From: Azolla caroliniana
Taxonomy: Eukaryota > Plantae > Polypodiophyta
Assembly (NCBI GenBank): GCA_043228905.1
Contig: JBHGNT010000021.1
Coordinates: 5,456,001-5,520,000 of the forward strand
Reading direction: 5' to 3'
DNA length: 64,000 nucleotides
Made by a program: the position numbers and the translations under genes. This document shows positions 41,171 through 43,874 of the stretch, piece after piece (position 1 is the first letter of the stretch; every line of letters begins with the position of its first letter). Below the pieces are notes generated by a model. That model was not told the DNA's origin and searched no databases. It was given only the letters and a program-made list of their open reading frames with translations.

Positions 41171-41880
41171 TCTTGTTTCCATCATGTTTCTATAAAATAA
41201 TAATACACAACAATCATTGTAGTGACAATAAAAATTAATAATGTTATTATTAATAATAATACTGTGAATTTGGTCTACCATCAAGGATGCTTTGTTTCCA
41301 GGATGCTTGATGGAAGGAAATCAAGCACATGGCAAGCCAAATTTTGGTGCCGATTAGCGAGAAGGCGAGACGGTTGTTGTGGATGTAAGAAGCAATTTCT
41401 TCTGAGCGATAAGGATGAGTGTAGATGGTGTGGGGGTTGAAGAAACAATTATCATGAGTTGGAATTTGGCGGTAATCGGCGAGATGGTTGATGTGGACGT
41501 AAGAAGAATTTTTTGAGGGATAAGGATGAGCGAAGACGGTGTGGGGGGTGAAGCAGAATATTATAAGTACGTATAGGAAATTGTTGAAAACGAGCAGTGA
41601 TTGCCAAGATGGATGTTGTGGAAATGGAAGTTGTTTATTTTTTGAAAGGATGAGCGAGAATGTTGTCAAGGTCATGAGTGGATTGGGATAGCTAATTTTT
41701 TCTTGGTTGTCTATGCAGGAATTTCAAGGAAAATGGAGAGATGGCTGATGTGGACATATTTGCAGCACATTTTTTGTTTTGAGTTTATATAACGATGAGC
41801 GAAGATGGTGGCAGAGGTAGAAGCAAAGTTTAGTGAGGGTATGAGGAGAGTGGATTTTAGTAGAGAACTAGTATTTGCAT

Positions 41881-42153
41881 ATGCTTGAGGAAATTAAGAT
41901 TCTTGCTCACATGAATCATGAGAATGTTCTTGCAGTGAGAGAATTTATACCAATTCCTCTGAGGATTAAAATACATTCATTCGGCAAATGTACTTCACCG
42001 AGATTTGAAGCCAGACAATCTGTTAGTGAATGAAGAATGTGATTTAAGGATTGATGATTTCGGCTTAATTCGAATATGTGGTAATAAGATGTTACAGATA
42101 ATCAAAATTGCTTCTGAATGCGAGAGCTTACAGTGCAACTGTGGACATTTGGC
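41881..42153 (+). pseudogene. MAP kinase (group A/B-like) fragment with internal deletions
   Basis: Three frames give [28 protein letters not shown] / [37 protein letters not shown] / [26 protein letters not shown]. Confidence 0.88.
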
Positions 42154-42345
42154 ATTTTGAAAGCTTGTGGGTGCATTAGATCCACAAACAAGGGTGAGGA
42201 GATACATTTCAATTCTGAGAGGAAAGAGCTTTTCTGAAAAAGCCAACTTGTTGGAAATGCACTAGTAGATATGATGTGAAATGTGGCATGAGCAAAAGGC
42301 AATGCTTGACATGGAATACATTGTTTACAGGGTATGGCCAGATGA
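42154..42345 (+). pseudogene. PLS-PPR fragment (L-S-P motifs)
   Basis: [18 protein letters not shown]...LF*KSQLVGNALVDM..KCG...TWNTLFTGYGQ, matching the motifs of the intact PPR genes in this window. Confidence 0.8.
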
Positions 42346-43874
42346 GAAGAAATGGAGTTTTAGCAAATCCGGTTGGAAATGCTTGTAGTCATATAGCCAT
42401 GGTTATATTGTGAAGCCAGGGTGATGAGCGTTTATTTGTATGCTGATCAGCATGCGAGAATGGAAGAAGATGGAGGAACATTGGGTCTAAGCCAATGATC
42501 ACATGAGATGGGAAGAAGAGTCATGTATGTGTGTCCACCGTTCTTTGTAGTCTTCTACTTTGAGTCTTTGAGTTTTTTATTGGCCTATCATGGCCACAAC
42601 TTTTACGATGTTGTCAGACTAATCATTTTCTCATGTATGAAGAATTTATACTAATGAAGAATATTGTTTTGGAAAAAAAAATAAAAAATTGGTCTACCAT
42701 CATTCCACAAATTTTTGTATAACAATTTCATGCAAATCCCTTGGCCAAATTCTATTATACATCATAGGGACATCACACATCAAACTTCATTCTTTACATT
42801 TGAGTGCTTCCAAACATTGTATCGTGAACTCAAGACTTTGATCATATGGCCGAGATACACTAAGATGGCATTAGATCAGTAAAATTCTAGCATTTGGCAA
42901 GTCATCACAATAATAGGAGATCATTCAAATTTTGATGTTCTCGTGTGATTAAAACCTTAATCCATTTAAATTCTGATGGCCAATGTGCCATGATCATAAT
43001 TAAGTCAAGCAAACTTTGTTAGGTCGGTAGAGTGAAAATTCTAGACTTTTTCTTCCTAGAGATAACCCCCCCTCTCCCCCCCCCCCCCCCTTCAAGGATT
43101 AAACAAGAAGAGAGGCCAAGGGGTAGCCTTGTAAATACCCAGAATTGAGGGGCATTTTTTGTGATTAGTTTTCCCCTTATGATGATAGAGAGCCATGGTA
43201 TCTGAATCATAGTATGAACCTTACGTATCATACGTGCATTCATTCATTCGCGAAAGAAAAACACCCCCAAAGAATGATAAATACCATACTTTTGGATTAA
43301 CTATTTATTATGAGGTAGATAAGCCTAAAAATGAAAAAAAAAACATTAAAAAAATGGGGAAAACATTCGCATTCGTTTTCAAACGTAGGAAAACGAATGT
43401 TATACTAGACGAACACGAATTTTACGTACTATGATCTGAATAACCTCTATATACCTTTCTCTGCACCTTTCTCACAGAACAGAGAACACACCATGGCTTC
43501 ACTTCAGGCTTGCTTTCTTTGTCAAGCTTTTTGGAAAGGCAAAAAAAGAAAAGAAAAGAAAAGAATGATGATGATGTTTGATGTGAACGCCATGAGGCTG
43601 TTTCTCACGTGGCTCTGCTTCAGTGTTGTAGCAAAGATAGAGGAATACAGAGACATGAATGCATTTTTTGGAAAGATTACTTGGAAAAAGAATCACTAAT
43701 ATTGGAGGAAGTAGTGCTTCAATTAACATTGATTTCATGAAAGTGTGTATGTTCATTGAGAAAGATTTTACCATACATTTGTTGATGTTTATTGATATGA
43801 ACACCAAAAGAAAAAGGGATTATTCTACGCTTGTAGTGTGGTAGAGAAAGGATCTCTTGAGCAGAACCCTTAAT

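Follow-up and report, generated by a model that had tools for sequence, protein, structure and literature searches.

The window analysed here is a stretch of 64,000 nucleotides of Azolla caroliniana DNA (contig JBHGNT010000021.1, positions 5,456,001 to 5,520,000 of the forward strand), in which a 1,405-bp insert spans positions 41284-42688. The insert is bordered by two copies of TTGGTCTACCATCA, an unstranded target-site duplication (TSD) at 41270-41283 and 42689-42702, which are identical at 14 of 14 positions and at 16 of 17 once the preceding AA(T/A) is included. All features within the insert are given on the plus strand. Its 3' end is formed by an A-rich tail (A9 T A6, 42672-42688) that belongs to the run GGA9TA6 at 42670-42688. 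A 1,405-bp insert with a perfect 14-bp TSD and an A-tail had been described in the initial annotation and was attributed to LINE-type target-primed insertion; the repeat and the A-rich run confirm the former, and the TSD, the poly(A) tail and the LINE relatives presented below agree with the latter. The 5' junction is untidy owing to a 16-nt patch (41284-41299), delimited by alignment with three related contigs (L009, L010 and L012) and composed of AGGATGCTT, TGTTT and CC, with AGGATGCTT present again at 41300-41308. The patch appears to be built from nearby LINE sequence. In addition, seven bases of the 5' TSD copy, TGGTCTA, match in register the LINE sequence found ahead of the truncation point in full-length copies.

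The patch is followed by a LINE 3'UTR repeat region (41300-41880) with 94-98% identity to six related contigs (L003, L006, L008, L009, L010 and L012). This region begins inside the second 205-bp tandem unit, ~237 nt past the ORF2 stop codon of full-length copies. Degenerate direct repeats with a spacing of 111-145 bp occur between 41360 and 41830, where degenerate repeats had been reported initially, and are absent from the output of Tandem Repeats Finder. Comparison of all sense frames of the repeat region with Pfam gave zero matches. The possibility that the 5' repeats represent CDPK EF-hands was ruled out, as 10 sense-frame pieces gained no support from Pfam even with E values up to 10 allowed; the antisense ORFs were likewise without a match.

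Next to the repeats lies a processed, decayed MAPK module of group A-like type (41881-42151), identified through Pfam, solved relatives and the alignment of copies. The piece at 41963-42157 matches Pfam Pkinase (3e-13), and Arabidopsis MPK6/MPK3 are its best solved relatives (1e-14), while the HEN...PLR and EYVV..YR*S..VDIW pieces are found in the two other frames. The module thus extends over three reading frames, with one stop codon and two deletions, and the threonine of TEY is absent. Both internal deletions agree with their earlier description; an intact kinase domain with a TEY loop is not present, and the module is a pseudogene fragment. These two deletions and the stop codon are common to every copy that covers the respective points. 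Contig L001 carries a plant MAPK gene whose introns lie directly after HEN, after LSEGH, and between HQLR.. and LIG.P. The window element is uninterrupted across the HEN intron site, so that the contiguity noted there in the first description stands, and the relatives are uninterrupted across the HQLR../LIG.P site too. Since the introns of the L001 gene are missing from the module, the MAPK part derives from a spliced mRNA. Skipped exons were rejected as a source of the shared MAPK deletions: relative to L001, the PLR-to-GLKY deletion runs from the middle of one exon to the middle of the next. The MAPK and PPR pieces were each searched alone, never joined into one model. A word search with the 65-aa MAPK piece retrieved just ordinary MAPK fragments, including those on L001 and L002, and no match that reaches across the out-of-frame tail.

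The PPR-derived module (42152-42520) was defined by comparison with the PPR ORFs of the window and by the alignment of copies. It contains an L motif, the start of an S motif and then P2/E-like remnants, and is interrupted by several deletions. The stretches ILKACG...GNALVDM and then KCG...WNTLFTGYGQ show 45-48% identity to the L/S motifs of two window PPR ORFs, which upholds the proposed assignment to a PLS-PPR fragment. A role of the insert as a source of siRNAs against the PPR family, proposed initially, gained no support here. Exact matches between the insert and these two ORFs reach 13 nt at most. No link of the insert to the PPR gene lying 1.2 kb downstream of it emerged from this analysis, and an exact look-up of seven window ORFs in a protein collection recovered none of them. 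The terminal segment (42521-42671) is common to the window and to the seven contigs that reach the 3' terminus of the family, and probably represents the 3'UTR of the PPR transcript that was captured. A more distant homologue, L013 (~80%), extends beyond this segment without a poly(A) tail. On contig L005, the PPR-module sequence extends a PPR reading frame that stays open for at least 622 aa. This contig was dismissed as the PPR parent: its tail is without a 95-bp PPR segment kept by L010, which identifies the tail as LINE-derived. Because L005 has the same flank as L006, it is considered a recombinant or an assembly chimera; short-read assemblies may be chimeric at repeats, and L005 is a possible example.

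The related contigs originate from public ENA assemblies of the series ERZ10343xx-ERZ10344xx and ERZ272272xx-ERZ272273xx, which are labelled as metagenomes. L003 was found by a protein-word search using an antisense ORF of the insert, L004 by another search, and eight contigs (L005-L012) were recovered by a 31-mer scan. The same block of repeats, MAPK and PPR pieces is present in all ten at 91-98% identity, and an identity of 94-98% to the other copies was determined for the window copy. Seven of the ten contigs reach the family 3' terminus, each ending in ...ATATTGTTTTGG plus poly(A); the tails differ between copies (A7-A14), and the 3' flanks represent six different insertion sites, the window included. 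No TSDs were identified for the other copies. A one-off chimeric retrocopy, for which a LINE reverse transcriptase would have switched on site among a PPR mRNA, a MAPK mRNA and a repeat-bearing RNA, could account for the TSD, the tail, the gene pieces that are free of introns and share the orientation of the tail, and the lack of a second insert copy within the window. It is nevertheless extremely improbable, given that ten other contigs with other flanks share the order of the pieces, the MAPK deletions and the stop codon, and that the differing flanks exclude a single shared locus for all contigs. Moreover, a perfect TSD surrounds heavily decayed coding pieces, which places their decay before the window insertion. 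A template-switch chimera of several mRNAs assembled at the site, one of the two alternatives of the initial annotation, is consequently abandoned.

The identity of the element that carries the block is evident from its more complete copies. In L006, ORF1 is intact (488 aa) and has a weak zinc knuckle, and ORF2 (1,455 aa) contains Exo_endo_phos, RVT_1 and zf-RVT domains, with human L1 ORF2p as its best solved relative (4e-62). L009 aligns with L006 over 6.4 kb at 97%. In five contigs (L003, L006, L008, L009 and L012), the end of ORF2 continues straight into the repeats and the MAPK piece. Among the sampled copies, the family 3'UTR measures ~1.9 kb and combines tandem 205-bp units, the MAPK piece and the 3' end of a PPR transcript. 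Because the block adjoins the L1-type ORF2 end in these five contigs and L006 has both ORFs, the insert is best explained as a 5'-truncated, non-coding copy of an L1-clade LINE of this fern that retains only the 3'UTR, with the chimera captured earlier, in an ancestral LINE (probability roughly 0.88). The insert belongs to a multi-copy LINE family, is truncated, and has both shared and copy-specific joints, including joints with splice-site ends. Three traits of a truncated LINE are found here: a TSD of variable length, a fixed poly(A) terminus with differing flanks and collinearity with an APE endonuclease/RT element.

An alternative origin is a non-autonomous, gene-fragment-carrying family (Pack-like or SVA-like) that uses LINE proteins in trans and of which the window copy would be a full-length or nearly full-length member. 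The variable repeat region, the gene-derived modules, the poly(A) tail and the TSD are in line with such a family, L010 with the short repeat layout of the window copy is found at a high coverage of 77x, and short copies of this kind could in principle be transcribed and remobilised. However, this origin is improbable: in five independent assemblies the block adjoins the 3' end of ORF2 without a break, among them L006 with both ORFs intact, and the window copy starts within a tandem unit instead of at a recurrent 5' end. L010 stops at the same point through the end of its contig, and a shared 5' terminus is therefore not indicated. SVA elements resemble the family in being modular, with variable tandem repeats, borrowed modules and poly(A), and in being mobilised by the L1 machinery, but SVA is without ORFs whereas full-length members of the present family encode ORF1 and ORF2. 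The 'Pack'-type family suggested initially can be retained with respect to mobility, as the search for further copies revealed the same internal joints with different flanks in many copies among the ENA contigs; its non-autonomous character has to be given up, since the block is the 3'UTR of a LINE with ORF1 and ORF2.

Length differences between copies provide further information on this truncated LINE and its family. GT..AG ends together with pyrimidine tracts are present in three of eight such differences (266, 108 and 95 bp). The 266-bp segment, G/GTGAGG...TTGTTATTATACAG/G (slashes mark the segment ends), has canonical GT..AG ends and a pyrimidine tract; it is found in L003, L006, L008, L009 and L012, and its scar at 41461-41462 marks its absence in the window copy, which L010 shares. 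The 108-bp MAPK segment (226 bp in L010), TTTG/GTTGGC...TTTTCTGCAG/GC, was lost in the window copy only (scar at 42151-42152). All nine contigs spanning this point retain at least 108 bp of extra MAPK sequence, which reads on as PLFPAKD.VHQ..ELMGTPTDA. The direct VDIW/ILKACG joint of the initial annotation therefore exists in the window copy but does not mark where the pieces were first fused; it results from a later deletion, specific to this copy, that removed at least 108 bp. The 95-bp PPR segment, ACAG/GTTATG...CACATTTGCAG/GG, is retained in L010 only, with its scar at 42330-42331. The remaining five differences (79, 118, 154, 14 and 193 bp) are not of the GT..AG type, and the candidacy of the 193-bp difference between L004 and L008 as a fourth event was not upheld on closer inspection. 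The window copy is a mosaic with an L010-like 5' end and a majority-like 3' end; recurrent identical splicing, first suggested by the distribution of deletions, was dropped on this ground.

The GT..AG ends in three of eight length differences suggest, at the level of DNA, that spliced LINE RNAs were retrotransposed. The copy-specific deletions, VDIW/ILKACG included, could also have arisen by accidents at the level of DNA or reverse transcription, such as microhomology-mediated deletion or template jumping. This explanation is the less likely one, but it deserves serious consideration: a microhomology of 2-4 nt also accompanies each of the three GT..AG events and fits template jumping or end joining, five of the eight differences are without GT..AG ends, and the 108-bp event has a weak donor (GTTGGC). 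On the other hand, about 0.11 GT..AG events with pyrimidine tracts are expected by chance among eight (P about 1e-4), so that the three observed exceed expectation ~25 times; a pyrimidine-rich stretch precedes the AG in all three, and two of the three donors (GTGAGG and GTTATG) are good.

The origin of the insert as a truncated LINE copy can be outlined as follows. The MAPK-PPR chimera would have formed once, in an ancestral LINE, either because the reverse transcriptase switched templates from host mRNAs to LINE RNA or because a locus already holding processed pseudogenes was taken along by 3' transduction, and would afterwards have been propagated by the LINE's own machinery. Cryptic GT...AG sites in the captured sequences were probably spliced in the LINE RNA before retrotransposition, generating part of the length variation, including the VDIW-ILKACG fusion. 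At the window locus, the LINE endonuclease would have nicked the target and the poly(A) of the LINE RNA would have primed cDNA synthesis. Reverse transcription presumably halted ~237 nt short of the ORF2 stop codon, and a staggered cleavage of the second strand would have created the 14-bp duplication. The resulting copy is likely to be without function.

Several features of this family are shared with known elements. In common with 5'-truncated L1-type LINEs (the plant L1 clade, with human L1 as the solved reference), the insert displays a TSD of variable length, poly(A) and 5' truncation, and its full-length relatives have ORF1 and ORF2 with APE endonuclease, RT and zinc finger, but the 3'UTR is unusually long (~1.9 kb) and contains tandem 205-bp units plus host-gene modules. 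For human L1, 3' transduction and L1/mRNA template switching are two known routes by which foreign sequence comes to lie beside a LINE poly(A), and such events are usually single insertions. In the present case, by contrast, the product turned into the master copy from which a family propagates. A recent catalogue covers human L1 3' transductions and template-switch chimeras (bioRxiv 10.1101/2025.02.02.635956). Retrotransposed spliced L1 RNAs have been documented in humans as SpIREs, dead-end copies from which 5'UTR or ORF1 sequence is missing (PMC5860796). Here too, a segment with GT..AG borders in unspliced relatives is absent from genomic copies that keep the hallmarks of retrotransposition. 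The putative introns differ in that they are located in the 3'UTR, within captured gene sequence, and a spliced full-length copy could therefore stay mobile. Gene capture by LINEs is described in PMC13534243 (citing Ellison et al. 2020) for telomeric elements of the TART/HeT-A type in Drosophila, in which nxf2, piwi or aub has been picked up in fragments. These are genes of the silencing pathway, and the host gene is targeted by small RNAs made from the captured fragment. Both cases involve an autonomous non-LTR element of which all or most copies carry, in untranslated sequence, a decayed piece of a host gene measuring one hundred to a few hundred bp. The family described here differs in its cargo (MAPK and PPR), its fern rather than insect host and the lack of a long exact match to nearby PPR genes.

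Taken alone, the window locus is a routine dead LINE fragment, and its annotation as a gene fusion or a new class of element is unwarranted. Truncated LINE copies of this kind can strew kinase-like and PPR-like pseudo-exons across the genome, thereby misleading gene prediction and retrogene surveys. The family as a whole represents a clear case in a plant, the fern, in which host cDNA fragments became fixed in the 3'UTR of an autonomous LINE and were probably dispersed across the genome with it, and signs at the DNA level suggest that LINE transcripts were spliced inside the captured sequence ahead of reinsertion. It can be speculated, as a rather distant prospect, that fern L1 lineages repeatedly acquire 3' pieces of host mRNAs in their 3'UTRs, that splicing remodels them, and that the modules might serve the element by contributing signals for polyadenylation or stability, or by giving rise to small RNAs that affect host PPR/MAPK transcripts as in the case of TART and nxf2. 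The family thus offers a system to ask whether gene capture by LINEs outside Drosophila affects the host.

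The segment at 41284-42688 is enclosed by two copies of the 14-mer TTGGTCTACCATCA, at 41270-41283 and 42689-42702, which lie 1,405 bp apart, and an A-rich run (A9 T A6) directly precedes the downstream copy. The target-site duplication (TSD) and tail described in the initial annotation were thereby borne out, as was the order of its contents: degenerate repeats, then MAPK and then PPR sequence. The direct repeats (~41360-41830) are spaced at 111-145 bp and are 63-86% alike; being too degenerate, none was reported by Tandem Repeats Finder, and a search for an EF-hand/CDPK origin found no support. 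Downstream of them, the MAPK sequence is split among three reading frames in pieces of 28, 35 and 26 aa, the middle one of which matches Pfam Pkinase (3e-13), with Arabidopsis MPK6 and MPK3 as its closest solved relatives. The PPR sequence that follows, a 27-aa piece and then KCG..WNTLFTGYGQ, has 45-48% identity to L/S motifs in the window's two PPR ORFs. The MAPK and PPR pieces were searched one by one, with no joined model.

No second copy of the insert was found within the 64-kb window. Copies elsewhere were sought by querying a protein collection with ORFs expected only in the insert. A 141-aa antisense ORF over the repeats matched one protein, the contig of which (L003) holds a second copy at ~94% identity, and an antisense ORF spanning the MAPK/PPR joint led to a third (L004). 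A 31-mer common to these three copies retrieved eight further contigs (L005-L012) in a scan of a metagenome collection. Module order and content are the same in all ten ENA metagenome contigs, as far as each covers them; these contigs may not be Azolla caroliniana's, and contigs built from short reads may be chimeric where repeats occur. Seven contigs extend to the 3' terminus of the family and, like the window copy, end at ...ATATTGTTTTGG. A tail of A7 to A14 comes next, and the sequence beyond it is unrelated, with six distinct 3' flanks including that of the window. Identity between the window copy and the others is 94-98% (97.3% for L009 and L012). Two deletions in the MAPK sequence and a YR*S stop are present in every copy covering those points, so the chimera predates all the sampled insertions. 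Of the two outcomes initially envisaged, the recurrence of the same modules and MAPK deletions in ten contigs, with six 3' flanks counting that of the window, supports a mobile family and speaks firmly against a one-off chimera made at 41270-42702.

The family itself is an autonomous L1-type LINE. An alignment of contigs L009 and L006 at 97% spans 6.4 kb and extends far upstream of the repeats. L006 carries an intact ORF1 of 488 aa, which gives a weak signal for a zinc knuckle and DUF4283, and an intact ORF2 of 1,455 aa with Exo_endo_phos, RVT_1 and zf-RVT domains, whose best solved relative is human LINE-1 ORF2p (4e-62, residues 41-902). In L003, L006, L008, L009 and L012, the ORF2 C-terminus ...PPRWLFPPP.PSLVEIT and its stop run directly into repeats, MAPK, PPR and tail; thus, the block taken for a retroposed chimera is the ~1.9-kb 3'UTR of this LINE. 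With the block adjoining the ORF2 end and both ORFs intact in L006, the suggestion of a non-autonomous 'Pack'-type retroposon was abandoned. The 205-bp tandem unit occurs twice, and the window copy starts within its second occurrence, ~237 nt past the ORF2 stop; it is a 5'-truncated, non-coding copy. Its initial 16 nt form a patch of LINE sequence from the vicinity, and seven TSD bases (TGGTCTA) match in register the LINE sequence GTGGTCTATATGGC, located just before the truncation point in full-length copies. This match would be compatible with microhomology having guided the joining of cDNA end and target. Comparison of window 41267-41316 with L009, L010 and L012 gives agreement of the 5' flank and TSD with the LINE upstream of the truncation at 23/34 bases, including exact in-register runs of 7 and 9, and the 16-nt patch also duplicates AGGATGCTT. 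Other LINE ORF2 relics, with ~24% protein identity to the family's ORF2, lie at 7523-8179 (minus strand) and 49048-49374 (plus strand).

The proposal that the MAPK part stems from a spliced mRNA held up in comparison with a plant group A/B-like MAPK gene (L001:4392-5870, ENA ERZ26858887), found by word search with the insert's MAPK piece. This gene has introns right after HEN, after ..LSEGH and between ..HQLRTIA and LIGVP... The insert is uninterrupted at the HEN site, and LINE copies less deleted than that of the window are also uninterrupted at the third. The PLR-to-GLKY deletion starts inside one L001 exon and ends inside the next; exon skipping was ruled out as its source because both ends are exon-internal, and the deletion was therefore made on a spliced template. 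Together, these features show that the MAPK module is mRNA-derived. The L001 gene, which adjoins a Ty3-type retrotransposon, is frameshifted directly ahead of TEY; a sequencing error (contig coverage 2x) or pseudogene status may account for this.

Two known capture routes fit the captured pieces. In template switching, reverse transcription would be primed at a PPR mRNA's poly(A), and the enzyme would then move to a MAPK mRNA and on to the LINE RNA; in 3' transduction, the LINE transcript would carry along a locus already holding processed pseudogene pieces. The final ~150 bp ahead of the tail resemble a 3'UTR that belonged to the PPR transcript itself. L013 (1-814, ENA ERZ27227311), homologous at ~80% to the element's last 335 bp, runs past the family's poly(A) site with no A run there and retains sequence missing from the LINE copies; it could represent the donor-locus lineage or a much older copy. 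In L005:3857-5722 (minus strand, ENA ERZ1034379), PLS-PPR sequence stays open for 622 aa or more and continues seamlessly into the LINE tail at ..VTYACILKACG. This contig has its poly(A) tail and 300 bp of the adjoining 3' flank in common with full-length L006 and was rejected as the PPR parent gene. Given the LINE-type tail and L006's flank, it arose either by recombination between a PPR gene and a LINE tail or as a chimera of assembly; both readings indicate a PPR gene that hardly differs from the captured module. A variant 3'UTR in L008 (oriented 1796-2523) and L004 (oriented 1115-1595) continues past the PPR module with a further repeat-like unit plus a second PPR fragment (AWNVLIANYAEH..LSPDTTTF), and terminates at a different A run. 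The L008 flank holds a class III peroxidase-like gene.

Eight internal length differences were detected among the copies, three of which have canonical intron ends and a pyrimidine tract before the AG. These are a 266-bp segment (G/GTGAGG...TTATTATACAG/G) missing in the window copy (41461/41462) and L010, a 108-bp segment (G/GTTGGC...TTTTCTGCAG/G) missing in the window copy only (42151/42152) and a 95-bp segment (CAG/GTTATG...ATTTGCAG/G) retained in L010 only (window 42330/42331). Allowing for 2-4 nt of microhomology per joint, chance predicts ~0.11 GT..AG events (P ~1e-4 for three or more), so some deletions probably arose when LINE RNA was spliced within the captured sequences and then retrotransposed. 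The remaining five differences (79, 118, 154, 14 and 193 bp) lack GT..AG ends; other deletions among the copies are ordinary ones. The direct MAPK-PPR joint VDIW/ILKACG reported initially exists because the 108-bp segment was lost and is not original: all nine contigs spanning this point retain the MAPK sequence (PLFPAKD.VHQ..ELMGTPTDA), and L010 has a further 118 bp there, reading to ..YIRELP. In its 5' half, the window copy has six derived substitutions, a 1-nt indel and the loss of the 266-bp segment in common with L010, whereas its 3' half follows the majority of copies. It therefore looks like a mosaic, a pattern that may stem from recombination of LINE subfamilies or from contig L010 being chimeric.

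Nothing indicates a function of the window copy, and no long sense ORF was found in the insert. Both PLS-type PPR ORFs of the window, at 43857-45899 (plus strand, 680 codons) and 12487-14550 (minus strand, 687 codons), are open with an E-motif end and show no DNA-level similarity to the insert. The longest exact match between the insert and the rest of the window, these ORFs included, is 13 nt, and the insert could therefore not guide 21-24-nt small RNAs against them; no link was found to the PPR ORF ~1.2 kb downstream. The window also contains the gag and integrase/chromodomain end of a Ty3/gypsy LTR retrotransposon (1034-3111, minus strand), an LRR reading frame of 635 codons (33200-35107, plus strand) and an ORF with part of a Myb domain (58939-59649, plus strand). 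For the LINE family, the putative spliced copies would be a plant counterpart of the human spliced integrated retrotransposed elements, SpIREs (PMC5860796). The precedent for captured modules that may matter to a LINE comes from Drosophila, in which telomeric LINEs have taken up pieces of nxf2, piwi or aub (PMC13534243).
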